Assembly: GCA_965235115.1 (NCBI GenBank)
Contig: OZ249436.1
Location: forward strand, 33,790,001-33,854,000
Length of the DNA: 64,000 nucleotides
Reading direction: 5' to 3'
Source: Laetmonice hystrix
Taxonomy: Eukaryota
Shown in pieces: positions 3,608-23,715 of the stretch (position 1 is the first letter of the stretch; each line of letters begins with the position of its first letter). A model generated the notes under the pieces. It did not search any database. It worked only from the letters and a program-made list of their open reading frames with translations, and was not told the DNA's origin. Position numbers and translations under genes: made by a program.

Positions 3608-6600
3608 AAAGGTATAAGAGGACTATCCATCTTTTTTCATGCATACTTTTAGGTGTGACTCTTTCATGCAACATACGAATAGGTAAGTACACCTTATTAT
3701 TTTGTTGTCCTATACAGTTGATATGTAGTGAGTAGTGAGTGCACTGTGACCAAGGACACTATGCCCATACATGCATTATGTATTGTTGCTACAGCAACGT
3801 ATAAAATTGCTGCAACTGCAAAACTGTCCGATACTAATGACAAAAGCCAAACCCGAGAGTCCACGCCTTATATAATTAATTCATGGATCCAATATTGTTA
3901 CAGGTGATCCGGTCCTCGGCCCCTTGGCTTTACGGACCACGTATAGACCACGTACATGAAAAAGCCTTGGAATTTTAACGACAGTGTACCAAAACAGCGT
4001 ATGACAACTAGCTTCAGCAAGACGTTCGGCTTTATACACTTCTTCAACAAGTTATACGGTTATGGCATGTCTGCTATAGCCGGGCTACCGGGGAAACCGC
4101 TTTGCTTGCATTCCTTGGGATAAGCTACTAGAATAGATTAAGTCTGGCCCCGGTGAAGGGCGCGATCCATATTCCATTTTCTGTGCAAGTTGCAACCCCT
4201 GCGTAAATAAGTGGCAACCCCGAATTGTGCACGGTGCACGCGATCTCCTCTGCATGGTGGAAGAAGTACGAATCGTTCATACAACGCAACACCTGCATTG
4301 TCGTATCTGGGATTTTCTCAAGGAGGTAGGAGAGAAAAACTGGCATCAAATACGCGGGCCCAACTCTTTGCGCCCCCCACAATCCGTCCTATACATTTTG
4401 ATTGTAGATTCACGAAATGTCAAACGTTGAAAAACTTTGTTTAGATTTATTCCACGTTGAGGCATCCTTCTATTGTCCTTTATTCTTTACCGGCCACGGG
4501 GAAACTCACGAAATCGTCTTTGTAATTGCATGTGCATCATGCAGTTCAGCGCCACTGTGATGATGGTAACCATATCTCTGGACCTTGTTCCGACTTTTGA
4601 GTTGGTACTCGTAAATGCATGGTAAGGCCCTATACAGTCCAAGAAAAATGGTTTATTGGTGTGCATATAATCAGAGGTTTCTATATAAGGAAGGTATCGA
4701 CGTATTTTGGGTATATATACACTCATCACCTGCACTATAGTGATTATATGTTAAGACCCCTTTCTTCCGTATTTCCATGCATGTCAACCTTCAGGGTCGT
4801 CAGAGAAAACTCTGTGTTGTTAATGCAACGTAGCCTTTCAAAGTTATTGCGTCCACTATATTTCTACGACTTTTTGAAGATGTTGCTAATGATGACACTG
4901 CACCGCGACCTTAAAATTTCTGCAAATTCCGAGGGCGCATCATGACATTTTCTATGGTATAGTTGTTCAAGGTTTCAACATAGTCTCCCCTTTTCAGATA
5001 ATGTGCTGAGTTCGGACCTTACTTAAAAAGGGGCAAAAAATCGTTTTTTGCTCGCCATGAAACTGGGTTGGCGTAGCTGGTCGGACGTGACGTCTTCCGG
5101 CGTAAAGCTTCTAGAAAACGCTATAGGTGACAGATTCGTTAAGCGAGATAGGCCTATGCCGCCTTGGCGTCTTACCCCGGCGGTGCGCCTTGACCTACGC
5201 TACTGGTCTGAATTGTATGCCGATAACAACTGATATCGTGACGTCACACGGCAACAGCAACATATATCGCCGCGGTCCCGACGAGATGGATCGTAGGGCC
5301 TAGATCTATAGGCTACTTTAATGTATATAGGGCCTACGTTACATCAATTCCAAATTCCAAATGCTTTTAGCATTAACTTTGTGATATCCCGTTGATTTCT
5401 TCGACGTTGAACTCCCCCCCCCCCCCCCCCCCCCCAGTTCCCAGTTGACAAATTAGGGAGAACACCTGGCTGTAGTCCCTGATTCGGATTGCCTTATGCA
5501 TGGACGGGGGCTTAAAGGGGCACCGCACGTAACTTCGAAATTTCGGAAAAAAAAGCTTAGATCTACCTGTCACCGACCCATTGACATGTGAAGACGCACT
5601 GTTGCTGCAGTACTGCAGTATGATGATCTTTGTTAACTAAGATTCAGGTCGAAGGTGTATAAATATGATAATAGCAGGATTTTGAATCTGTCTCCTCTCT
5701 CCGAAAGTGGCGCTGCAAATGACGTAGAACAACATCCCATATAAATCCCAGGTTCCGGGGAATCCCATGCTAACTTCCGGTATCTCTCTACAATATTTCA
5801 TCAAAGCAAGCGTATACGCTTGCTTTGCAAATATGTCTGCGATGAAACGGGCTTTTAAGTGCCGAAAATCGATGTATCTAACAGGATCAGCTAAAAATCT
5901 AAAAAAGGATAGCGCATTAGATCACCTACGCGCAAAAGGGACTTCTCCTGTTGTCCAGCTATCCAAAATGGCCAAGTGGTTGGAAGATAGCGCGTTGGAT
6001 CGCAACGGAATCGGCTGAGCGTTCTTACATTGGTACATTTGGTTGGTCTCACTTAATTTTATTTGAGTGAGTGTACGTACACGGGCTGCGGCTGCGCCTC
6101 CGTTACCCCGGGCAACGCTATACGTCGGTGCGAGTTCTTGGTGGCGTTGCACCCGATCAGCGGTGAAATATCTCTTCAGGCTGTCAATACGACAAGTTTG
6201 AGGTGTATGACGTCGCTGATCAACTCGACCTTCAGTGGCCGTCTTCTTCTGTTGACGAAACGGGCACTTCAGGAAGTATGATCGAAGACACCGTTTATGT
6301 AACGATTAAACGGATTGTTCGGTAAGTTTGTATTAACATTGTCATTTCAATTTTTTATATCATCACTACAATCTTTCTGTCTCATTCTTTGTTCTGAACC
6401 TTATCGAACTACAAATTGTCCACATAAGAACAAGTTTTATGATCACGCCAAGACAGTTTCACTCGTAGGCCTATCTGAAGCTGGACAGTCGGCCTAAAAC
6501 TTTGCAAGGTTACGCACTCTACGCCACGTTTTTCTGAGAGTTAATCGTTAAAACTTGGAATTTCATCGTCGAGACTGCAATTCCAAAATTAGACTATGAG

Positions 6601-7490: not shown

Positions 7491-9409
7491 GCAATTAGAG
7501 AGGTTAAGAACCGCCCCCAGTTCGAGACCGAGAACGAGGGGATTCCCTTTTTGTTGACTACGTCATCAGTCCCAGAGGGCTTCCACCGCGGCTGGAGGTC
7601 GACTCGGTCGTGAAAACGTGGTGGAGTGCTTGAAGTCGTAAGTGATTTCCGTGGTGATTCAATTCCACTTTTAACCTTAGTTTTGTTAAGAAAGTAATGT
7701 CAAATATTACGAATATTAGCATGGCCGTTTGGCCCCACATTCCCCTACTACGTCATCAAGTGTGGAGGGCTTCCCCATCACGACGTCGAAATTTCGGTTG
7801 GCCAAACGCCGCAACTGCTTCGAAGTCGATAGCGATTTCCGAGGTGAATTCTTTTACTGAAAATCTTTACCTCATTTAATGTACGTTTTAACATCCGAGA
7901 ACGACAACGACTCGTCATTCTCGTTCTCGTTAATCTCGGGGCACATCTTAGCTTGTCTATAATGACCACTTTTAAGGGTATAGTGTCCAATGCCTAATAG
8001 GCCTAGGCCTACTGAATTGGTAGCCATGTTAGGGCAAACTATAGATCTAAGTCCTTTATTATGGGTAGCAACAAAGCCAACAGAATTCTCCAATTAAGTA
8101 AGAAATATAAGAAGGCCCTACAGCTGATTATCAACGCATTTAATATTATTCCGTAGATAGACCTATATGGCATAGGCTCTGCCATCTGCATGCATATCTA
8201 GGTAGGTGATAAGTTTCATGCATCATACAATTCACTCAGCTTTCTGACGCCGATGTCCGAGAATTTGTAAAAAAATATTATACATAAAATTTCTCGGTTC
8301 CGTCTGAGGCATGAATGGACGGTGGCCCGTGATATATGACGTACTGTCCCGTTTTCCCCTAAGTGACATTTTAGAAACATTTCAACTCATGTTTTAGAAC
8401 AGTTTGAAACAAATCCCTCAGTCGTTCTAGTTACTGTTATTTAAAATGCGGATATGAATTCGATCTCTGATCCCCTGGCTTCTATGTCATGTTGGTTAAC
8501 CAGAATCGTTACATCAGACACGTCAGAATTCTAAAAAAAAATTCAAGTAAAATACTTGAAACTAGAGGCATCGCTGCCACTCCGCGCGGAAATTGTGACA
8601 TCACGTCTGAGGTAGGCCTATACTTCCAAGACGAAACAATAGGTGGCACTTCTTTTAGAGGCTGCGTTATTTACCTGTCCCTTTTTGACCCGCGTAGGCC
8701 TCCAAGTTTTACCCCACACTCCCCTATATATACACAAAAAGGTACCTCGTTTTCGTTCTCGGGTAGACCGGAAACTGTCCACCTGGCTGGGTGCAGACTG
8801 AGACCGTAGCGCAGCGGCCATTTTATATGGAATTCCCGTTACGGAAGTGGCGTTGTGCGCATCGAGTCTGATGGCCTGCCTCCTAACTGCGCTCCGTGTA
8901 ATCAAGAGAGCTGGGGACCAGTCCAAACGCTGCTACATACGCAACAGCCAATCCAGGTGACTCTGCAATCACTGATGCATGAAGAGAGTGAGATTCTTGG
9001 TATCTGGTTATTCCTGTCCCTCACAACAACCCATTGTGAAAAAGAGGACAGTTGATACTTTTTTTAAAGTTCAAATTTTTAGTTAAAAGTAGCCTATTGG
9101 TGCGTTTTCATTGACTGTCAGTATAATTCAAAATGGTCGCTGCATGGCAGCCATCTTGGATGTAAAGACATTTCAAGCAATAACTCGCACAAAACAATCA
9201 AAACAATGGTGCAAAGGAGGTGCGTTTTAGGGGCAATGTATATGCCAATGTATTCTCAGTTCAGAGCAAATATGGTGGCATGGCGGCATATTTTCGATAG
9301 CCTGGATCTTCAAAAACAAGTTTAGGATAACGCGTCAAGGAGCTGATTTTCAAAAGAGGCCTCGAAAAAAGTTTGAGTAGCACACCCAATAAACAGAAGG
9401 GTTGACTTA

Positions 9410-10948: not shown

Positions 10949-11856
10949 TGTAGCGACCCTGACTGTGGGTGTTAGTTTTAGTACAGGGCCGGGGATAGTT
11001 TACTTCTCGTTGTGTTCATTTACCTCGAAAGGATTGAGACGGTGTGGCTGGAGTGGGGGAAAATGGACTAAGGTGTTAAATATGGGCAAAGAGGGGAGGT
11101 GAGACATAACACAGCATATAGTTGATAATGAAATATATTGGTCACTTCACGGTCCCTGACCCGTTGTGGTTGGCGGCTTACCTGGTTCATGTGCACGTCA
11201 GTTACAAATCAAGATAGCGGGTTTAGACAGGGGGGGGGGTACATCTCTTGGGAGAGCGCCACTCCTTTGGGAGGCGAGCCAGCTAGCAACACACACCGCG
11301 GAACAGCAGGGTAGGTCTTCGGCGCAGAAGGTAGCACTGGGTTGGGAGGCTCGGCATTGACCTATCAGTCGCCAGCCTCAGCCGGACCAGGTTGCCGAAT
11401 GCACTCCCGCTGCTGGAAACTGAAGATTCTCTTGTAGACCAGTGCCGCCAACTGCGCGCTTACTCCGCTCTCCCGACTGCTGCTCTACTGCTGCTCTACT
11501 GCTGCTCAGGCGGGTGGTGGTGCTGGCTGCCGTCCCATCGGAGAGGGTGGATCACTCTCCCCGAATACAGGGCGTGCAGGCCCTTATAAAGGGGGGACCC
11601 TGCAGCCTACCAGGCCGGCGACCAGTGAGGGGCAGCCCTCTCCACCCGGCCAGCGGGGCTGACCAATGGGCAAGCATCCGCCCAGGAGTGGCCTGAGATT
11701 GACGTCTCAGCTCCCCACTTGGCCACGCCCACGCACGCACAGTCTGGACACTGGCGGGTGGGAGGGAGGCCACCACGGTCACCGGCACATACACTAGAAT
11801 AAGGCCTTACAATAAACTTAAGGGAAAAATGCACACACAAACCCAAAATCGCCACA
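10949..11856 (-). repeat. 3' LTR (908 bp)
   Basis: Direct repeat of 18682-19589 at a constant offset of 7733; predicted ORFs in both copies are identical. Confidence 0.97.
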
Positions 11857-11870
11857 TCCCACCCTACCTT
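11857..11870 (-). other. Polypurine tract
   Basis: AGGTAGGGTGGGGA on the minus strand directly abuts the 3' LTR. Confidence 0.85.
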
Positions 11871-12084
11871 CGTAAAAACTCGTCCTCGAGTTTAAGGCAA
11901 GGAGGGAACCACATAAAACGGGAGTACAATCAAAGCTAAGGTCAACAAGAACGTTGACTGACAAAAGTATACTTACAAAAGTACGCTTAAAAACACTCAC
12001 AAAAGTATACTTACAAAAGTACTGTAAAAAGAACTCCTTGGCCTAACACCTGCTTTAATAACTGACCCAAGGAAAAGTAAACGA

Positions 12085-12470
12085 TGGGGAGAGGGGCTGA
12101 TCTGCCTCTCCCTCTCCAGCGGTGGGGTCACACGACAAAACTCTACTTTAACACTGGCCCAGAAAATTAAAAATAACGACTAAGGGGCTAGTCTGCCTCA
12201 GTCTCCAGCGTTGGGGCCTGTAAAACAAAATACGTTAACACAATAATTACATCCTGTCAATCTAACACCGGCCCAGAAAATTAAAATAACGACTAAGGGG
12301 CTAGTCTGCCTCAGTCTCCAGCGTTGGGGCCTGTAAAACAAAATTAACACGAATATCAAGTCCTGACAGTCTGCTTTAAAGTTTAACACTTGTGGCTCAG
12401 AAAAATACAAAATAGCTACTGGGGCAGGGTGCTAATCTACTCTGCCCCCTCCAGCGTTGGAGCCAATACA
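12085..12470. repeat. Tandem units of about 114-121 bp in the 3' internal region of the LTR element
   Basis: ACAC(T/C)GGCCCAGAAAATTAAAAATAACGACTAAGGGGCTAGTCTGCCTCAGTCTCCAGCGTTGGGGCCTGTAAAACAAAAT at 12151 and 12265, with diverged copies on both sides. Confidence 0.85.
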
Positions 12471-12485
12471 CTTTACCTTTACACT

Positions 12486-13223
12486 TTACATAGACGGGGT
12501 CGCCGGAGATTCTAAAGACACAAGAGCCGAGCGCAAGACGTCAATGGCCCTTTGCTGCCTGCTGCCGTTCCTGACCTGTCCCTCCAACTCGTGGATCCGA
12601 CCCTGCCGGGCGTCGATGGCCTGTTGATGGGCCGTTCCTAGGTCTTGCAGGTGGAGCTCGTAAAGCTGCTCCCGCCTATTCCAATACGCCCGTTGTCGCG
12701 TTGTCAGGAACTCCTGTAGATCTCTGGCGTAGCAGAGCCACTCCTCAATACTAGCCAGCTGCTGCTGCAGCTGGGTCAGATGCAGCCCGCGTCCCTCCCT
12801 GTCAGCCGGGACGGGCTGAGCGTCGAGTGCCGGTGTGACCAGACTCTCAGACGGGGGGCGCGTGGGTGACCCATTCCTAAGTTGGGGAGTTGGTGCTGGG
12901 GTGGCCGCCGGACGCCCTGCTGTGGACGCCGCTGGTGTCTGGCCCTGCGGTGGGGGGTTCTGAGAGTGCCGTGGTGACCCTCGGGGGCCCATCTCTCTCT
13001 GCCGACGGTGGCTGGCCTCACGGGGGTGCCCAGGCTGCCCTCCGGTGCGTGCTCCTCGGTGGCCGGGCCGAGTTCGGTCGGCCAGGTGGGGCCTGTCTCT
13101 GCTGGTCGGGGGTCGGCGCTGCCCTCCCTGGGGGCGTGTGACGTCGGGGTTCGGCTGGCCTCCCCTGGCCGCCGCTGTTTCTCCGTCAAAATCGGTGCCC
13201 GCGTGAATCTCAATAGTGTCCAT
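12486..13223 (-). CDS. Accessory ORF (245 aa) of the LTR element; Pro/Arg-rich N-half, helical/coiled-coil-like C-half
   Basis: ATG-initiated and intact, in the same orientation as gag, in the env-like position. No signal peptide or TM segment is evident. Confidence 0.6.
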   Translation of the reverse strand: MDTIEIHAGTDFDGETAAARGGQPNPDVTRPQGGQRRPPTSRDRPHLADRTRPGHRGARTGGQPGHPREASHRRQREMGPRGSPRHSQNPPPQGQTPAASTAGRPAATPAPTPQLRNGSPTRPPSESLVTPALDAQPVPADREGRGLHLTQLQQQLASIEEWLCYARDLQEFLTTRQRAYWNRREQLYELHLQDLGTAHQQAIDARQGRIHELEGQVRNGSRQQRAIDVLRSALVSLESPATPSM

Positions 13224-13452
13224 GACAGCAACTTAGAATGACTTGTTATATCGACCTAGTACAACTCCAGAATGAGGGTCAGTCTCTCCAGCCCTACATA
13301 ATTATACCCTCCAAACTAGGCAAGTAATAAATAGAAGCCTTGTTTAACTTTTATACCTTTTGTAATTTGACACTTTCTTTGCTAACTTGGGGGTTTCACA
13401 TCCTACCCGGTCGTCTCGGCGGGCAGGCAACATCATCCTCACCGCAACTAAC

Positions 13453-13526
13453 GGTTGTCCATAAAAGTATCAGGCTGCTGAGGGTTGTCCATAAAAGTAT
13501 CCGACTGCTGATGGTTGTCCATAAAA
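13453..13526. repeat. 30-bp tandem repeat (3 copies)
   Basis: GGTTGTCCATAAAA at 13453, 13483 and 13513. Confidence 0.85.
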
Positions 13527-15599
13527 CCACCCGGTTTTGTGTAGTAGTCCCTAAAACAATTAGTGGGGGTGTCGGCGGCAGACCAACAGATCAAGGGGAC
13601 TTGCCGCAGTCCGTCCTGTGCGCTGGAGGACGACACCCTGCCGGGGCCTGGACCACGGGGAGGGTGGCGGTGCCACCACGCTGGCCCCCTCATGGCACCT
13701 AACTGGCATGGCCAGCAGACAAAACATCTTCTAGTCTCCAATCAACTAGTTAGTAATACAAAACTACCTAACTACCCATCATATATAGCTGGACTCTGTG
13801 TCCCGCGGAGATTCCTACCGACCATATTACGTCATACTACAAACTCCAATAATAACTGTTTTGAACCTATAAACTTCCCTTAATGCTTCGCTCCACATGG
13901 GGCTCTGTAATAGCACTCAAGTCATATGCAAAAACTGGTGGTCGAATACCCTCGACCTTCCATAAACACAATGAATACATGTGAGAAATAATCACACCTA
14001 AAAGACTAATTCAAACAACTGAAATCCATAACTGCCCCATTGGGAAAAATGTGCTTGCCGCCAAAGCACTGTCAACCAAATACATGTACGTGTGTATATG
14101 TACTCACTAACCCTACCTAACAGGGGAACTGTCACTGAAATAAGTCCCTTGACCTATTCTAACTTGTTCTTCCTAAACAGAGATCACACACCCTGATATA
14201 AAATAAAACATTTCCATGATCAACCACCAGACAAAAGAAAACTGGCTTAGTCCATAAGAGCGACTATGAGTTCCATGACCCATCTTCACGTAGCTATGTC
14301 CAAATAGGACAATCAAAAATAAAAACCTCCGGAGTAACCGCTTAACTCTAGGAAACGTATATCAACGCACAACATCATCTTTCTGGCCAAGTAGCGGCCT
14401 ATATACCCCAGGACCTTTGTCCTGTATCCTCAACGAGTAAACACTTTACACATTAAATTTACAAAGGCACTTGCCTATCCGTATTCACCTATCATATATT
14501 GCTTCTGCAGAAACCTGGCGCCTCCTAACCGGCACATAAGTACACCCATTAACACCATCAATAGCCAGCGATAATACACACACCACACACCAACCCTTGT
14601 TAACTATCCAACTCTCCCCTCATAAAACATTTCCAAGGGATGCTCCTCATCAGAGCCGTCCTGCCGCTAGGATGTAACTCTCCCACACTAGATGTCTTTG
14701 ATGACCGGCGATGTGGTCAGCTCACTGACCGCTCTGTTCTACCGCACTTCACACCTCATCTAATTACTTTGCACTCTTGACCTACCCCGTTGATCAGACA
14801 ACAACTGCGAAAAACTGGAAACTTGCACTCCACACACTCTGTACTAGAATTCACAATAAATAGGTTACATTCACCTGCAACATGTACCTCAAACTGAAGG
14901 AAACAACTTTTGTAGACAAAACACCTGTGTCTACATTTTCACTCTTTAGACTGATTCAGTCCAAATATTCCTCTGATGTTTTTAACTGTATGTCAGTCCT
15001 CAAAAGTCCCAACCTCAACGGATGCCTTCCCTATCACTCAATAAAAAAGATACTGCACCCTCGTGCGACAAAATCAACCACAGCCACAGCTCACTGCTGC
15101 TTCCTCAGCTGTCCATAATGAGTGATAGAGGATCAACCTGACAGCTTGTCCCGATACCAAGAAAAGATAAAACCCTATAAGTCTAGCCGCAACTCATTGC
15201 TGCATCCGTGGCTACCACTGGCGCTTCTCATGGAACGTACGACACTGAATAAATAAAAAAAAATGCACCGAACCTATTGCAGACGAGACAACAAAAGTCT
15301 ATACTTTGGGACTGACACACACATCAGGCAGACTCTCGACTGCTTACTAATCTCTTCATCTATCTCAACAACCCGGGCGTACATATGTGAATACACTAGT
15401 TAACAACACTACTCCTTCCCTTTCTTTCATCTCTCGCAGTTATCATCCCTCCTGTTCAAACGTTACTTGGCGGTCTATTCGTTATACATGTAGACTACTT
15501 CGCCATCCTCAGTTACACCCGATGTTATGTAACATTTTACTGACGCCCTTGGTGTCGCGGGGTTGGGGTGGGTGTGGGTTGCAGGCATCTGCCCTGGGT

Positions 15600-18500
15600 T
15601 TACAATGTCGGGGTGGTCACCATGTGGGTCGCCTTCTGGGGTTCAGACAGGCTGCCGACAGTGTCTGAGACCCACTGCGTCAATGGGGGCCATTGAGGAT
15701 CTCCCCAATGGTCCGAGCTCAATGGTCCGATCTCTCGGTGGCGGGTACGGCTGCATTCCCACAGGCCAACGGACAGGGGGTGTCGCTGCCCAACTTTCAC
15801 ATCATCAAAACCATAAAACGCCTCATCAACACCCTCATCAGGGGGTTCTCCTCCGCTGATGAGCAACTTCTCATCGGGTCCGACCCGCAGGTCAGGTGGC
15901 CCCTCCGTCAATAGTGTTGGGGAGTCCCACAGCTCCACCTTTGTTCTCCCTCCATGGCCGTCTCGACCCTTGGATGTAGGATCGGTCATCCTGTCCCACA
16001 GTGGGTGCATTGTGGGAGGGAGGGTTCCGACTGGCCCATCACCGACTGGACCTGCCTTCCCGGAAACCTGAGGCCTGGTCGTTCGCAGGTCATTACTGGC
16101 AGGCAGCCCAGTCGTCCTCTGGCAACCAAAGTGGGTACTGGGGCCCCCAATAAACTCATTAGGCTCCGCCATGAAGGTGTCAGCTAGGCGATCCCAGCTC
16201 GTTGGGCTGTCCAGCAAGGCCTCCACGGTGGGGGCGGCGTCCCCGACACCAGTTAAAACAATGCCCCTCTGTCCAGGCTCTCTGCCGACATCTCGCCCTG
16301 CATCCCTTTGATATGTGTCCACAGGCACACCCAGACTGCGTGAGGGTCGGAGCCGTGGGACGGGACTGGGTCGGGTGGAGACGGGCGGGGACCGGGGTCC
16401 ACTGGTGCCATCCTGGCTTGTTCCCACGTGAGCACATGAGGGAAGGCACCCAGAACGCATGAAGATCGCCACTCCATTTAATCTGATAACATCGTCCCTC
16501 AGGTCAATCACTCCGTTTTGCTTTAATATGAAATCCAAACCAAGAATACCCTGCAGTCCCCATATGTTAGCAACAATCGTCTCATGTTTGTACTGATGCC
16601 CCTGTACACCCAGCTCTACATCTATCTTCCCGTAGACATCAAGGGGCTCACTATTGACAGTCCTTAACTTAGAATCACTGTGGATTAACTTTGGACGCGC
16701 AGAACTTTCTATATCCAGAAAAACTGATTTGTCAATCACCGTTACCGACGAACCCGTGTCAATCAGCATGTCAGCTGTAACTCCACAAATATCAACCCTA
16801 ACATATTTACACTTTTCTCTAGCCAGAGCTAGTATCATCTCCGACTCATTTGAATTCTGATAATTTATATCATGTGGTTGGTTCCTAGACTGTCCCTCAG
16901 TTGGTTGACTCTGCCTTGCGTCATTCCCACCATCTCTATAATTTGGCCTCTGCCTAACTGGATTTCTTCGCCTCATGTCTTCCTGCCTCAGCATACAATC
17001 GGCTTGGAAATGCCCCTTCTTTTGGCAGTAGAAACAGATACTTTCTCCCCTCCCTGTCCGGGATCTGTCAGTCATCTCTGTCCGCACTGCTTTAACTATC
17101 AGTTCCTGCAGCTGGTTGGGACTGAGGGATGCAGGGGCCGTCAGTTGGCCGTCGGCCGGCACGCGAGGAGGCATAGAGTTCCCGACAGGCTGTACTGCTG
17201 CCAGCCTTCCCCTCCTACTCTTAATAGCCTTGGCTATTGACTGGCTCTCAATAGCCACCGTCACGGCCTCCTCTAGCGTGCGACATCGAGCCTTTCTGAC
17301 GTCCTGCTGCACCTCCTCACTCCACAAACCCTGGCAGTACCGTTCGACCAATTCATACTCATCTCTACCATATGTAGCTGGGAAAGCCTTTCTGTATAGG
17401 TCTTTGAGGGCCCGCCCAAACTCGTCTACAGCTTCACCCTTTATCTGGCAACGGTTGTAATAGTCCGTCCTGAAAGCAACTTGTCTGCCCTCAGGAGCGA
17501 ACCTACTATTTAACATTTGTTTCAGTGACCCCAGGTGGCGTTTCTGGGATGGCTGGAGGTCCCGCATTACCGTGCTGGCCGGAGGTCGCAGAGCAGCCGC
17601 CAGCTGCACGGCAGCCTCGGCATCTGTCCAGCCATTCCAACCAGCCACCTGGTCGAAGTGTTCCTCATAATCCTCCCATTCCCGGGCCTTCCCATCGAAC
17701 TTGTCTAAGTTTAATGGGTCCCTTCTAATTGGTTTGGGGGTGACTGGGCGGGGGTCTCTGTGCCATCTCTCCATCTCACTGTCTCTCCTGCCTCGGCGCA
17801 CGCTGAATCTGGGGTAGTGGCCACCATCACCCTCATCAGCCGAACTATCTGAGTGGCTTGGCCGTTGACTTGGCCATTGGGGGCGGGTGCGTAGAGACAC
17901 AGGGCTGTAGAGATCATAGTCCTTTCTGTGGGGGTGGGGGTTGATATGGGAATATGGTGTGGCCATATGGGAACGGGGGTGACCACGGTGGGGCTCCCTG
18001 TGGGGACGGGGGTCATCATAAACTTCTCTCGGTGTGAGAGCCTCACGCTGTGGGTAGACCTCCTGCTGATGGTGTCCACCCTGCTGTGGGCTGCCCACCC
18101 ACTGGCTTGGGCGGGGGGTGGGACGGGGCCGGCCAGCCGACAGGCGGGGGCGATCTCCCGATGGGTGGGAGGGTGTCCTCACACAATGGGGCTCTGTCCT
18201 TGGCGGGCTGGCCAGTCTGATGGGGCTGTCGGCGTCCTTTCGATGTGGACTGCTGGGTGACTGGGCGTTCCTTCGATGTGGACTGCTGGGGGACTGGTCG
18301 TTCCTTCGATGTGGACTGCTGGGGAACTGGGCGTTCCTTTGATGTGGACTGCTGGGGGACTGGTCTGGCGTTGGGAGCACGTAGTCGGTGACCACGTACT
18401 CATCTGGGGAGTCACAACTATGCACACAGAGTGCATCAACGTACTCAGCCTGGGAGTCACTATGCACACTTAGTGCAACCGACTCCCGGGAGTACGCTGC

Positions 18501-18620
18501 CCGGACATCGCTTCGTTGTCGGCTGCCTAAACTGGAGGTGGATGCATGTCTGCGTAGTAGGCCAGGCAGCGATCTGATAGAGTCAGACAGCCGCCTGAGC
18601 CTGTCCTTTGCCCGGTCCAT
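15600..18620 (-). CDS. Gag-protease polyprotein (about 1006 aa from the first ATG) with an unassigned tail of about 290 aa
   Basis: Gypsy capsid-like region (KFDGKAREWEDYEEHFDQVAGWNGW...LNSRFAP), zinc knuckle CFYCQKKGHFQADC, aspartic protease LIDTGSSVTVI...GILGLDF. First ATG at 18620 (GAG ATG G); the ORF track starts earlier at a TTG. Confidence 0.92.
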   Translation of the reverse strand: MDRAKDRLRRLSDSIRSLPGLLRRHASTSSLGSRQRSDVRAAYSRESVALSVHSDSQAEYVDALCVHSCDSPDEYVVTDYVLPTPDQSPSSPHQRNAQFPSSPHRRNDQSPSSPHRRNAQSPSSPHRKDADSPIRLASPPRTEPHCVRTPSHPSGDRPRLSAGRPRPTPRPSQWVGSPQQGGHHQQEVYPQREALTPREVYDDPRPHREPHRGHPRSHMATPYSHINPHPHRKDYDLYSPVSLRTRPQWPSQRPSHSDSSADEGDGGHYPRFSVRRGRRDSEMERWHRDPRPVTPKPIRRDPLNLDKFDGKAREWEDYEEHFDQVAGWNGWTDAEAAVQLAAALRPPASTVMRDLQPSQKRHLGSLKQMLNSRFAPEGRQVAFRTDYYNRCQIKGEAVDEFGRALKDLYRKAFPATYGRDEYELVERYCQGLWSEEVQQDVRKARCRTLEEAVTVAIESQSIAKAIKSRRGRLAAVQPVGNSMPPRVPADGQLTAPASLSPNQLQELIVKAVRTEMTDRSRTGRGESICFYCQKKGHFQADCMLRQEDMRRRNPVRQRPNYRDGGNDARQSQPTEGQSRNQPHDINYQNSNESEMILALAREKCKYVRVDICGVTADMLIDTGSSVTVIDKSVFLDIESSARPKLIHSDSKLRTVNSEPLDVYGKIDVELGVQGHQYKHETIVANIWGLQGILGLDFILKQNGVIDLRDDVIRLNGVAIFMRSGCLPSCAHVGTSQDGTSGPRSPPVSTRPSPVPRLRPSRSLGVPVDTYQRDAGRDVGREPGQRGIVLTGVGDAAPTVEALLDSPTSWDRLADTFMAEPNEFIGGPSTHFGCQRTTGLPASNDLRTTRPQVSGKAGPVGDGPVGTLPPTMHPLWDRMTDPTSKGRDGHGGRTKVELWDSPTLLTEGPPDLRVGPDEKLLISGGEPPDEGVDEAFYGFDDVKVGQRHPLSVGLWECSRTRHREIGPLSSDHWGDPQWPPLTQWVSDTVGSLSEPQKATHMVTTPTL

Positions 18621-18654
18621 CTCCGCTCTTGAACTCACGCCAGCACACAGCTCC

Positions 18655-18674
18655 AATCCTGGTCACGCGCACCA
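18655..18674 (-). other. Primer-binding site, tRNA-His-like
   Basis: TGGTGCGCGTGACCAGGATT versus the recalled complement of the invertebrate tRNA-His 3' end, TGGTGCCGTGACCAGGATT (one extra G). Confidence 0.75.
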
Positions 18675-18681
18675 GAAATTC

Positions 18682-19589
18682 TGTAGCGACCCTGACTGTG
18701 GGTGTTAGTTTTAGTACAGGGCCGGGGATAGTTTACTTCTCGTTGTGTTCATTTACCTCGAAAGGATTGAGACGGTGTGGCTGGAGTGGGGGAAAATGGA
18801 CTAAGGTGTTAAATATGGGCAAAGAGGGGAGGTGAGACATAACACAGCATATAGTTGATAATGAAATATATTGGTCACTTCACGGTCCCTGACCCGTTGT
18901 GGTTGGCGGCTTACCTGGTTCATGTGCACGTCAGTTACAAATCAAGATAGCGGGTTTAGACAGGGGGGGGGGTACATCTCTTGGGAGAGCGCCACTCCTT
19001 TGGGAGGCGAGCCAGCTAGCAACACACACCGCGGAACAGCAGGGTAGGTCTTCGGCGCAGAAGGTAGCACTGGGTTGGGAGGCTCGGCATTGACCTATCA
19101 GTCGCCAGCCTCAGCCGGACCAGGTTGCCGAATGCACTCCCGCTGCTGGAAACTGAAGATTCTCTTGTAGACCAGTGCCGCCAACTGCGCGCTTACTCCG
19201 CTCTCCCGACTGCTGCTCTACTGCTGCTCTACTGCTGCTCAGGCGGGTGGTGGTGCTGGCTGCCGTCCCATCGGAGAGGGTGGATCACTCTCCCCGAATA
19301 CAGGGCGTGCAGGCCCTTATAAAGGGGGGACCCTGCAGCCTACCAGGCCGGCGACCAGTGAGGGGCAGCCCTCTCCACCCGGCCAGCGGGGCTGACCAAT
19401 GGGCAAGCATCCGCCCAGGAGTGGCCTGAGATTGACGTCTCAGCTCCCCACTTGGCCACGCCCACGCACGCACAGTCTGGACACTGGCGGGTGGGAGGGA
19501 GGCCACCACGGTCACCGGCACATACACTAGAATAAGGCCTTACAATAAACTTAAGGGAAAAATGCACACACAAACCCAAAATCGCCACA
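18682..19589 (-). repeat. 5' LTR (908 bp)
   Basis: Reads TGTGGCG...CGCTACA on the minus strand and is followed by the PBS. No differences from 10949-11856 seen by eye. Confidence 0.97.
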
Positions 19590-19596
19590 ATACCAT

Positions 19597-19743
19597 CAGT
19601 GGCATAGCGTCGGGGGCACAGAGGCATTGTTATACTTTGTTTCCAGACATTATGAAGGCACATGTCCCCATTTTTACCAGTATTATTAAGACTGACTCCG
19701 AACTCCTTTGCCCCCCACTTATTGGGGTCACGTTATGCCTATA
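19597..19743. mobile_element. Possible short MITE (CAGTGGCATAGCGT...ACGTTATGCCTAT)
   Basis: Imperfect TIR and G/C-run interior similar to 3447-3607. Confidence 0.35.
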
Positions 19744-20049
19744 TAGGTTTAGGCGGGGCAAGCTGTAACAACTAACCCGTAACAACTATCCCGAGACGGA
19801 ATTTTTTACATAAGCACATTTTTAGTAAAAACAGTGCATGGCTGCAGCTTGACTTCTCGCACAATGTGAGGCCACTATACTCAAACATTGTACCGATGTC
19901 CAAACGAAAGCAGTGCCAGAGCCATTCGAGAATCCTCGGCCATATCTTCGAAAGTAGCCTCGGGTGAAATAGGCGACATTTTGAGCATTGCATCGCGGGT
20001 ATATTTAGCCGGGACTCTCGCCAGCATGGCAGTGCTTGCAGTATTTTGC

Positions 20050-20151
20050 CTGCATCAGGCATGGAAGCAACTAAAAAAGGCCTCCAGCGCTTTCCCCAAA
20101 GTCAGTGGGCAATATTACGATAGTATCATGTTCATGTTCAAGTAGTCCTAC
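20050..20151 (-). pseudogene. RecQ-like SF2 helicase motif I relic (possibly Academ-transposon derived)
   Basis: VGLLEHEHDTIVILPTDFGESAGGLF*LLPCLMQ resembles D(V/T)xxxLPTGxGKSLx(Y/F)QLLP. Confidence 0.55.
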
Positions 20152-22285
20152 TGTGTGTCGTGCTGTTGTCGTTCATGGGCGCGGCCATATTTCTTCCCAT
20201 AATTTGAAAAATTACCGTATCACGCCCATTAGGTAAATTAAGCGATTCATTTTTCTTCTTCAAACGTTCCCCTTCATACCAGAAATTTATATTTGCACAT
20301 ACAACGCCGAAGGAGCAGGTTTCAATAATGCACTACTTCCTGGCTCAATGGGATATGACGGTTCACTCAGTGCCTCGCTACACAGGTCGATTTCGCCATA
20401 TATCTGGTTGCCAACGCCCATTTCACCCGAGGGTATATGCAGAAATGACGTCCTATGCCCGAGGGAATCCCGAATGTGCCAGAGCCTGTGTCAGAGCTCT
20501 CACGAAATCTTTTTAGAGTCAAAATCTCACTTTGACCATCAATTTGTTTTTCAACATAACTTTTTTAGTTAGGCCTATAGAGCGATCAGCGCTGGCGTTT
20601 ACTCGCTCATGGTTCTTGAAAGAAGTGATGGCTTGATGCTGTTCAGCGTGGCTTCTATCCTCTAGATTCGGAAATACAGGGTTGGACGTGTACCAACTAG
20701 ACCCGGTCTCCCCTACATTGCCCGCGCGCGTAATTTCGGGTATAAGATGAATATCGTATTATCTGTGATATGTTGGCCAACATCGCAGCAATCAAATGGT
20801 CATAATAATGGTCATGAACTTAGCCCAGTGCAGACAACATGCTTCTCTTACGGTACAGTAAAACAGTGGGTTTAAGTTACCACTATACGGAACCTTTCAG
20901 AGTACTAGGGCATTCCTAGTAAACAAATTCAATAGATAATTTTTTATATAGTCTATATATATATATAGGCCTAGCAGAGGAACGAGTTTTTACTAACTAA
21001 AATATAGATCTCTTATTCTCTTACGTCAGTCTACAGACCTAGCCCTAGCCCTACCCCTAACCCTCAGTTAGGCCTATAAGAAACTACCTCAGGCCGGAGT
21101 AAACGGATTTGAGTGTAGGCCTACGTGACCTAGCGCACCTGCTGGCCTACGTGACCTAGCGCACCTGCATGCAGTTCTGAGCCAATCAAACGTATTTCAG
21201 AGTAGATTCTATCTTAAAGGATCATAACACAGCCGTAGGGTACAGAATTCAATCCTGTGAGGAGAGGCACTATCCCGAGCAAGTTCTCGGCTTGCACTTT
21301 AAACTATTCCCTGAAATATATTGAAGATATTGACATTGCATTACGTCGGCCTACATTGGACAAAACTATAGTACTTCCAACGGCCTTTACAGCATTTTGA
21401 TGAATGCCCCGTGAGGTACACGGGAACAAAATCCTCCCCCACAATCCCATGATGTGACGATGCCTGTGAAACGTTTGTATAGCACCTATGTAAGGATACA
21501 ATCAACACCAGTCAAGTGTAATTCATGCGTAATGACGCGTTAATCTCGGGCTGTGAAATCCTTCACACCTTATTCGCACACTTAACATGCATTCGATGGA
21601 GAACAGCAGTGAACGAACATTCGTATTTTACCGTTTGCTTAGACAAATGTCGATTATTCCGATGATATGTTCCGGTTACAATTTACTCTACCCGTTATAC
21701 CTCAATCGGCATCTTTCATCGTTTGCTAGTTTATTCGGAGGGGACGTGGGGGTGTTGTCCCTGACGACAGTACGTTTCCAAATTTAGTTGCGTGTCCTTC
21801 GCTTTCATGAATGTTACCAGGACGTTTTTAATGGACACACAAACGCACTTTGGCGAGGAAGGCGTGGGTGGCTATATATACGGCCAATTGTTATTCACAA
21901 GTGTAATGCGATAGGCCTTTGTAAATTAATATAGCGCCCGTTCTGGATATAATTTGTCGGTTTAGGGTAACCTATTATACGCAGGTTCAAAAGTAAGATT
22001 AGGATAATAAGATTCTACATGTCTGATCCACTGGCCCGACCGGCCAATGTTTCTATGGTTGGCCGTGCATGGTGGACAAAAATCAAGAATGCATCTTACC
22101 GAAAACATAAAATCATGTCTTCGTGATTTTAGATTTTACGGCCAATTATAACGGTGACATGGTGCGTCACAAATTGATACTTTTTTAATCTTGATTTGAC
22201 TGTAATAATAAGTCTAACCCGCGGTAAAATCGGTACCAGTCATTGAATTTATTTTGACACTTCCCTCTCTCTATTTCTGTTTTAG

Positions 22286-22694
22286 GGTTGCGCTTCTAAT
22301 TCAAATCGTACACTTTGAATTTGGCGTCGAGGGTTGGCCATTGTCGAGGAAAACAACTGCAGCTGACAACAGTACTTTCAATATCGCGAATCAAACATTG
22401 CAAGAGGCTACGGGGATCGAACCTTCCGATTTCACAAAAGTTTCATTGGGAGAAACGCAAGAACTAAAGTTGTCTGATGTCGCGTCGAGTGCGGTTCGAG
22501 TGACACGACGGCAGTCGTTGGTTCCGGTGATGAAGGGGCTATGTCACCGGATTTGCCATCACTGTCGGCAGGTTGCCTCCCGCAGGGTGGCAGCTTTATG
22601 CCATGGTGAATGCCAATGGAACGGAGAAATGTATCGAGCTTGCCTTACTTTGTGGGTGTTGTACGTGGATCTAGGACTATATAACGTATCATAG
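22286..22694 (+). CDS. Exon of a putative secreted six-cysteine neuropeptide precursor (eclosion hormone/CHH-like spacing)
   Basis: Strong acceptor (CTCTCTCTATTTCTGTTTTAG), hydrophobic stretch VALLIQIV...GVEG, propeptide, RVTRR convertase site, then Q-initiated C-x3-C-x2-C-x11-C-x3-C-x9-C and a TAG stop. The start-codon exon is not identified with certainty. Confidence 0.72.
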
Positions 22695-22839: not shown

Positions 22840-23715
22840 CTGACTTTTACATGTCAGTCTAGTTCTATGCTTTTTAGTACGAAAAGTATAATTTTCATGG
22901 TAGTTAACCTACACCAAAAAAAAGTCAAAGGCGGCTAACTCCTAAAAATTGTACTTGATGTTATAATTTAATGCGAATGGTAAAAAATCTGCAAGTCTGA
23001 CTTTTTAATGTCTATTTTACTATTGGCCAAGAATGTCAAGAGTCTGACCTTTTAGCGGTTAAAGGCAGGGTAACTACCCACGGCAAATAAGGTTTCGTAG
23101 ACCAAATGAAACGCCAGCATTTATCTCAGGGCAATAAATGACACAATTACATTGTCTAAATGAAGTAATTAACGTGTAACTGCCCGATGTGTGCCGCAAC
23201 TGGTTCTGCTTGTGTGTTCAACACCTCGGACGTTTACAAACGTTGGGACTCTAAACATCGTGTAGACAAGGTCTGTGAGCAGAGTAACACGTAATGTTAC
23301 GCAATACGCCGCGGTGTGCAGCATTTGGCTCGGATGAACACACAAGAAGGTCAAGGTAAGAACCAGCGGCGTCATACATCAAGCGGTTACACGTTAATTA
23401 CTTCATTCTGACAACATAATTGTGGCATTTATTGTCCTGAGTTAAATGCTGGTGTTTCATTTGGTCTATGAAACCTTATTTGCCGTGTGTTTTTACCCTG
23501 CCTTTAATAAACTGGAAAATTCTGAATTTTTAGTGGTCGCGAATTAAAAACCTGACTTTTTGGTATTCACTGTAAATATCTCTGACTTTTTACCAGTTAA
23601 GAACATAAAAAGTCTGACTTTTTGTCGGTCAAGAATGTCAAGAGTCTGACTTTTTAGCGGTTAATAAACGAAGATTCTGACGTTTTAGTGGTCATTAATT
23701 TAAAACCTGAATTTT
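22840..23715. repeat. Degenerate tandem array of TCTGACTTTT-containing units, interrupted by the 23063-23503 MITE
   Basis: Recurrent (A/G)GTCTGACTTTTT and AAACCTGA(C/A)TTTTT units. Confidence 0.7.
23063..23503. mobile_element. TTAA-flanked MITE with TIRs of about 125 bp (Kolobok-like AGG...CCT ends)
   Basis: TTAA|AGGCAGGGTAA...TTACCCTGCCT|TTAA; long imperfect inverted arms; an empty-site paralog occurs at 23627-23693. Confidence 0.9.

Follow-up and report, generated by a model that had tools for sequence, protein, structure and literature searches.

An exon of Laetmonice hystrix probably encoding a secreted, prohormone-like precursor of an unnamed annelid family with likenesses to CHH and eclosion hormone

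Closest described peptides and the framework of the window peptide

In both eclosion hormone (EH) and CHH, three disulfides join Cys1 to Cys5, Cys2 to Cys4 and Cys3 to Cys6, and the cysteines of CHH are separated, from Cys2 to Cys6, by x2, x12, x3 and x8. EH and the ITP of Drosophila use membrane guanylyl cyclases, and the ITP of Bombyx uses GPCRs (PMC13311285). EH has been known beyond the arthropods only since 2017-2019 (PMC5627052, PMC6660194); in echinoderms, EH-like type 2 (Spnp15-like) precursors combine a 3-2-11-3-9 cysteine spacing with C-L after Cys6, an acidic spacer and a dibasic site (PMC5627052). CHH/ITP was regarded as an ecdysozoan family until 2023, when a relative with four cysteines was described in Spiralia, namely 'CHH DREP', which Koch et al. 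placed in the CHH superfamily because kappa-Ssm1a, Ta1a and the kuruma-prawn CHH were among its top matches (PMC10501145).

Here we describe a locus in a stretch of 64,000 nucleotides of the Laetmonice hystrix genome (assembly GCA_965235115.1, contig OZ249436.1, positions 33,790,001 to 33,854,000, forward strand), the whole of which is called the window below. The locus is probably the second exon of an annelid gene with two coding exons, which would encode a secreted, prohormone-like precursor of an unnamed CHH/EH-like family; its features and those of its flanks are collected in Table 1.

Compared with EH, the window peptide likewise starts its cysteine domain with C-x3-C-x2-C and goes on with C-x3-C and a sixth cysteine, whereas its 3-2-11-3-9 spacing departs from the 3-2-12-3-10 or more of EH, and it lacks the F/Y-G...D/E-G motif, which is found between Cys3 and Cys4 in the EH of Capitella, in that of Daphnia and in another gene of the present genome (L006, see below); the window peptide reads RQVASRRVAAL in this segment. 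The echinoderm EH2 peptides (Spnp15/ArEH2), compared by their description (PMC5627052), have the identical spacing and the same order of signal, spacer, dibasic site and peptide. As for CHH, the span from Cys2 to Cys6 is 29 residues in both, built in the window as x2, x11, x3 and x9, and CHH, ITP and MIH are helical peptides of ~60-75 residues with three disulfides, as is predicted of the window peptide. The CHH superfamily also comprises toxins derived from it, namely Ta1a and Ssm6a. However, Cys1 of the window peptide is placed at x3, one helical turn before Cys2, and that of CHH at x15/16; the window model has three helices and CHH has five; and the window peptide follows a long spacer, its gene would have the intron inside the signal peptide, and its family is so far annelid only.

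CHH DREP is likewise found in annelids (and also in molluscs). As proposed for the window gene, its coding sequence is split between two exons by an intron in phase 2 (PMC10501145), and both peptides are predicted to be helical, with kappa-Ssm1a, Ta1a and CHH/MIH as the nearest solved structures. In contrast, it has four cysteines (two disulfides) and not six, it directly follows the signal peptide and not a 59-residue spacer, it carries C-x2-C-G-E-F/Y-(Y/F)-G, and its intron falls after the signal peptide and not within it; the motifs of the window family are absent from the available portions of the supplements of that study (PMC10501145). Small Tim and CHCH proteins also have two antiparallel helices with two parallel disulfides, but these proteins are intracellular and have no signal peptide, propeptide, third disulfide or third helix.

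Table 1. Positions of the features of the exon and of its flanks in the window
Feature	Position	Strand	Basis or observation
Coding exon 2 (probable) of the precursor gene, its last one, with the stop	22286..22694	+	open frame, homology, depth, variants
Polypyrimidine tract and AG acceptor, phase-2 intron	22260..22285	+	sequence; intron of the Capitella orthologue
Predicted signal peptide: hydrophobic core and C-terminal end, VALLIQIVHFEFGVEG	22287..22334	+	translation; aligned with the cores of orthologues
Ser/Thr-rich spacer, poorly conserved, with two N-x-T/S sequons	22335..22511	+	translation
RVTRR, putative furin/prohormone-convertase site, end of the spacer	22497-22511	+	translation; basic site common in the family
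Predicted mature peptide, 60 residues, N-terminal Gln	22512..22691	+	translation; AlphaFold2 three-helix bundle
Six-cysteine core C-x3-C-x2-C-x11-C-x3-C-x9-C	22542..22643	+	pattern scan; Cys invariant in 103 sequences
TAG stop codon	22692..22694	+	translation
Young LTR element, 8.6 kb	10949-19589		
Gag-protease ORF of the LTR element	15600-18656	-	
Repeat	19924-20600		summed contig depth up to ~4x10^5
Repeat	21928-22124		summed contig depth ~2-6x10^3
Repeat	22930-23700		summed contig depth up to ~2.5x10^5
26 bases of the assembly, 150 nt past the stop	22844		missing from DNA-run contigs (all three runs)

The exon, its gene and its surroundings

The exon belongs to an ORF at 22254-22694(+), and the frame of this copy is unbroken over 135 codons. 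The pyrimidine-rich tract ahead of it is 26 nt long and ends in an AG at 22284-22285, after which the exon opens at 22286 on base 3 of a codon, thus setting phase 2 of the intron. The point at which the signal peptide is cleaved is a putative one; the spacer counts 59 residues, 25% of them Ser/Thr, and 16 residues follow the last cysteine. In the window, a pattern scan returned the six-cysteine arrangement only once, and the exon is covered at a depth of ~50 in DNA runs, as expected of a single-copy sequence, vs. thousands for the flanking repeats. No in-frame ATG was found in the exon upstream of a Met that sits three residues ahead of Cys1, so that the coding sequence has to begin in an exon further upstream.

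The orthologue of Capitella indicates what such an exon may look like. Indeed, its exon 1 consists of ATG, 7 codons and 2 nt (about 23 nt) with the donor CAA|GTAAGT, and is followed by a GT-AG intron of 587 nt in phase 2 and by an exon 2 that opens with G and the signal-peptide core; the phase and the place of this intron, within the signal peptide, are identical to those of the window acceptor. From this two-exon structure it follows that the window exon would be exon 2 and that its first coding exon would measure ~20 nt. The orthologue L022 has a similar layout, with no ATG between its putative acceptor and its signal-peptide core, although it is ambiguous since its pyrimidine tract contains, only a few bases further upstream, an in-frame ATG. 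Exon 1 of the window gene was not located: a donor-PWM scan of 19590-22250 returned no donor of the right phase with at least 5 bits, and no convincing candidate was seen within 2.7 kb of the exon. Short contigs from Logan, NCBI and ENA were searched for transcripts of relatives; the sequences that were read (L020, L022 and L024) look genomic, with an acceptor-like tract ahead of the coding region, and the NCBI records are genome assemblies.

The flanks of the exon are rich in mobile and repeated sequences. The young LTR element, whose gag-protease ORF runs on the strand opposite to the exon, separates the latter from all plausible exon-1 candidates. Candidates upstream of the element (e.g., 9206-9219, 3666-3682 and 2571-2581) are unverified and we do not claim any of them; if one of them were real, the element would lie within intron 1, and it may thus be located antisense inside the first intron of the window gene. 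The three repeats of Table 1 surround the exon, and the nearest upstream one stops ~160 nt before the acceptor; the depth of unique sequence is, for comparison, ~50. Note that the 26 bases missing from the contigs of the DNA runs relative to the assembly reflect either an allele or an assembly difference.

The stretch was contained in three DNA runs, all from one sample, and no RNA run matched. In the DNA runs, depth stays level across the acceptor, and no joint was seen at 22286. Among the variants listed from the contigs of these runs for a 5-kb stretch (a small sample, beside which there are 4 further variants), 8 single-base variants fall in the exon, 7 of them at codon position 3 (P=0.0026) and 5 of them synonymous (P about 0.02-0.04); among these listed variants, only one replaces a residue of the mature peptide (Glu to Asp), and indels are found several times in the flanks and never in the exon. 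Variant density in the exon is not below that of the flanking intron. Since the exon variants lie mostly at third codon positions, this pattern suggests purifying selection.

The family and its predicted fold

A search of the genome (627 Mb, 35 contigs) identified two paralogues that keep all six cysteines, L002:1321-1752 on C30 (G000:C30) and L003:1228-1665 on C2 (G000:C2), with E values of 1.3e-9 and 9.7e-7, respectively. The likely start of L003 is the Met of MMGALL... at ~1228-1235, past the acceptor, and not the first ATG of the ORF. Its spacer contains, at L003:1321-1482, a tandem duplication of ~26 residues (VPLNNREHLDVQPAE.ERKVDTRSVRGQ, twice), from which the spacer appears to evolve freely compared with the cysteine domain. 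Two weaker genome matches were set aside: L005 is not claimed as a family member, and L004 is a chance match to a long, coding-looking tandem repeat (L004:756-1830, G000:C13) with units of ~27 residues and several open frames.

Word-index homology searches, either with the window protein or with the alignment of the three copies, returned no result, nor did a PDB search with the window protein. In an exhaustive search of 1.84 billion representative proteins, a profile made from the domains of the three genome copies matched 148 clusters with E values of at most 1e-3, 47 of which reached E<=1e-10, and the family was found by this route only, given that the word-index, Pfam and PDB searches gave nothing. 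The matches are small proteins (median 161 residues) in which the domain is always C-terminal, and the window copy itself matches the profile and carries the six invariant cysteines in its C-terminal domain. The exact 3-2-11-3-9 spacing is kept in 105 of 139 members, a hydrophobic N-terminus in 100 of 142, and a basic site, most frequently 7-9 and at most 25 residues ahead of Cys1, in 121 of 143; as an example, KR, RR or KK is seen by eye 8-10 residues before Cys1 in P0031, P0047, P0036, the L020 orthologue and the window. Past Cys6, the members typically have 8-25 more residues, a range that includes the 16 of the window copy.

Concerning the origin of these proteins, 6 of the 30 clusters that were looked up name an organism, and all six are 'hypothetical' or 'uncharacterized' proteins of annelids (Capitella teleta, Paralvinella palmiformis and Lamellibrachia satsuma are the named sources), while two further JGI/IMG clusters read 'hypothetical protein', with no organism. 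In a maximum-likelihood tree, weak with its 60 usable columns, the three Laetmonice copies fall in separate groups (SH-aLRT 84, 89 and 88), and the window copy clusters with Capitella P0022 and Lamellibrachia P0032 (SH-aLRT 84). The window copy keeps the signature of this subfamily, C-x-W-x-G-x5-C-x-T, and W111, G113 and T121 show no variation over 14 sequences, among them that of the window. Distant annelids also share many positions beyond the cysteines, e.g., those of R-x-A-A-L-C and G-G-R-A-Y-D-A-C-L-T-x-W. Judged by its sequences, the family is conserved across annelids in three old paralogue groups.

No true match to the motif strings and accessions of the family was found in 8.4 million full texts, in which figures are not searchable, and both are absent from the supplements, some of them partial, of studies on the neuropeptide complement of Platynereis, the precursor set of Urechis, EH in the moulting pathway, spiralian neuropeptidomes (with a large curated collection) and toxin-based discovery. 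The family is thus apparently conserved but undescribed, with no name found for it. The initial annotation had regarded the locus as a spliced exon of secreted-precursor type, with a basic cleavage site before a six-cysteine domain, and the open frame, the acceptor, the translation and the orthologues bear this out. Its cysteine pattern is no product of chance, as two paralogues keep all six cysteines, 148 clusters match the profile and 105 of 139 members have exactly this spacing, and the six cysteines, whose conservation in relatives was to be looked for, are invariant in the 103 aligned sequences (A3). The same results remove the qualification of the peptide as an 'orphan', since it belongs to a family with two paralogues in its own genome and with relatives in other annelids.

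Membership of the EH or CHH families could not be detected by profile comparison. The window protein had no Pfam match, including PF04736 (EH, at E<=10) and PF01147 (CHH), and genome scans with these two models (PF04736 at E<=10) matched none of the three family loci. Over the 103 members, Pfam returned one sub-threshold match to Eclosion and two to Crust_neurohorm, with a best E value of 0.037, and the family profile found no CHH or MIH among PDB sequences. The genome scan with PF04736 matched another gene, L006:1447-1677 (G000:C3, ~28181727), at 23.2 bits vs. a gathering score of 25. This gene encodes a precursor of 76 residues with a signal peptide and a 3-2-12-3-15 spacing, carries the EH hallmark C-x3-C-x2-C-V-E-I-F-G...D-G-R-R-C, and resembles the Capitella EH in the supplement of De Oliveira et al. 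2019 (PMC6660194); by this hallmark, L006 is the true, canonical eclosion hormone gene of the genome. When the family alignment of 103 sequences was compared by hhalign with a profile of only two sequences (L006 and one relative, A4), the probability was 0.18% over 18 columns. Finally, the family is missing from the available part of the published EH data set (PMC6660194 supplement).

With the family alignment as input, AlphaFold2 predicted with confidence (pLDDT 86.6) that the window peptide forms a bundle of three helices, which span 6-23, 26-36 and 41-55 in a query of 62 residues, and did so for the C2 paralogue as well (pLDDT 89.9). In the window model, helix 1 carries Cys1 and Cys2 and helix 2 carries Cys4 and Cys5, symmetrically round the turn at 24-25, and this helix-hairpin geometry favours the bonds Cys1-Cys5 and Cys2-Cys4 and leaves Cys3-Cys6 to tie on helix 3; these three bonds would thus be the most likely pairing, which is also that of EH and CHH. 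Foldseek against the Swiss-Prot models placed crustacean CHHs at ranks 1, 4 and 13, with TM scores of 0.53-0.57, 23-27% identity and weak E values of 3-9. Among 48,161 PDB representative chains, VIA-align with the window model ranked kappa-Ssm1a (Z 4.2), Ta1a (Z 3.5) and MIH (Z 3.4) at 3, 14 and 17 and gave Ssm6a a Z of 3.0; the alignment with MIH 1j0t covers 53 residues, from 2-55 of the model and 8-62 of the chain. With the C2-paralogue model, the same three structures reached Z values of 4.7, 4.4 and 4.0 at ranks 2, 6 and 12, and Ta1a was superposed over 45 residues with an rmsd of 2.1. The aligned ranges bring Cys2-Cys6 of the model onto Cys2-Cys6 of CHH/MIH. Note that these fold scores are low and that unrelated helical proteins score alike in both Foldseek and VIA-align; because of this, the fold evidence consists of the recurrence of the same matches and of the cysteine register. 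Foldseek against PDB, AFDB clusters and the ESM Atlas returned nothing informative, and a search of the ESM Atlas by features returned no match.

Altogether, the family would combine a predicted fold like that of CHH/ITP with a first cysteine like that of EH, with no detectable sequence membership of either. The hybrid framework that the initial annotation had noticed is therefore retained, Cys1 to Cys3 being arranged as in eclosion hormone and the span from Cys2 to Cys6 as in CHH. An all-helical fold had also been anticipated, and among small disulfide peptides the model indeed matches CHH, MIH and Ta1a best, with weak scores. On the other hand, a place of the peptide in the EH or CHH family is not supported by the profile searches, given the Pfam result, L006 as the true EH and the hhalign probability. 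Thus, of the designation 'divergent EH/CHH-superfamily', the predicted helical fold and the cysteine framework stand, and detectable Pfam membership of EH or CHH does not.

Alternative readings and the meaning of the family

The family could consist of secreted, cysteine-stabilised peptides with a non-hormonal role (antimicrobial, toxin, pheromone or reproductive protein), a reading that we consider unlikely while granting it a real chance. Indeed, many defence peptides and toxins are likewise built of signal peptide, propeptide and a disulfide-rich domain at the C-terminus, and the nearest solved structures include the venom peptides kappa-Ssm1a, Ta1a and Ssm6a. However, Capitella, Paralvinella and Lamellibrachia, the sources of the named members, are annelids in which, to our knowledge, no venom is known, and the conserved positions outside the cysteines together with old paralogue groups form the pattern of a receptor ligand rather than that of a fast-evolving toxin or antimicrobial. 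It is this conservation, along with the variable spacer and the age of the paralogue groups, that speaks for a receptor ligand and against a toxin or antimicrobial peptide. We regard it as highly improbable that the window protein is an intracellular helical hairpin of the twin-Cx3C type (small-Tim or CHCH-like) that is not secreted at all: its Cys1-x3-Cys2 and Cys4-x3-Cys5 on two antiparallel helices and weak matches to Cmc1 and Mdm35 recall such proteins, but in most members a hydrophobic N-terminus is followed by a spacer, long and variable, and by a basic site, a third conserved disulfide would tie on helix 3, and no small-Tim Pfam model was matched.

The family may also be real and the window copy recently dead, i.e., an exon relic that lost its start codon or first exon, perhaps via the insertion of the 8.6-kb LTR element. 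The first hint of a lost start codon came from the acceptors of its relatives, which lie 4-5 nt before the ATG in the paralogues L002 and L003 and 1 nt before it in L020, the closest orthologue, unlike in the window, where no in-frame ATG follows the acceptor and no convincing exon 1 was found nearby; the young LTR element upstream and the match to DNA runs only, with no RNA run, point in the same direction. Yet the Capitella orthologue also has no ATG after the acceptor, its ATG being in a tiny first exon that joins in the same phase, and L022 is alike, with the ambiguity mentioned above. Moreover, the intact frame, the presence of all family and subfamily invariant residues, and the listed variants, mostly at third positions and with no indels, speak for a functional copy, so that a dead copy appears rather unlikely. 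Less probable still, the window gene would be a divergent paralogue within the true eclosion hormone family, to which its EH-like C-x3-C-x2-C start, the spacing, the C-L after Cys6 and the order of spacer and dibasic site that it shares with the echinoderm type 2 precursors (PMC5627052), and the single weak Eclosion match (1 of 103 members) would point. Against this, the Pfam EH model picks L006, with its F-G...D-G hallmark, and none of the three family loci, and both the hhalign comparison with the two-sequence EH profile and the available part of the EH data set (PMC6660194) separate the family from EH.

The reading that we favour is therefore that of a functional gene for a secreted, prohormone-like precursor. 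In such a gene, a short upstream exon would provide the Met and a few residues and would be joined by a phase-2 splice to the signal-peptide core, as in the Capitella orthologue. The signal peptide would be removed from the precursor, a furin/PC-type convertase would cut after RVTRR, as the conserved basic site suggests, and the N-terminal Gln of the released peptide may cyclise. The 60-residue product would fold into the three helices of the model, held by three disulfides in the predicted pairing, and, from the conservation pattern and the fold, would act as an extracellular ligand like CHH/ITP and eclosion hormone; by analogy, a membrane guanylyl cyclase or a GPCR would be candidate receptors. 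A hormonal role for the window peptide is thus suggested by the architecture of the precursor and by its conservation.

A broader proposal, which we put forward tentatively as a possibility, is that the family forms a third branch of an ancient EH/CHH-ITP superfamily, annelid-wide and possibly wider, with orphan guanylyl cyclase or GPCR signalling and three anciently duplicated ligands per worm. As regards genome annotation, the genes of the family now stand as 'hypothetical' and are easily missed because their first coding exon has only ~20 nt. The family would also offer new candidate peptide hormones for annelid models, e.g., Platynereis and Capitella, and would supply ligands to be tried on orphan receptor guanylyl cyclases. 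If the proposal is true, a spiralian three-disulfide peptide with an EH-type first cysteine and a CHH-type span from Cys2 to Cys6 would link both arthropod hormone families, and would be a data point on whether EH and CHH/ITP have a common origin.
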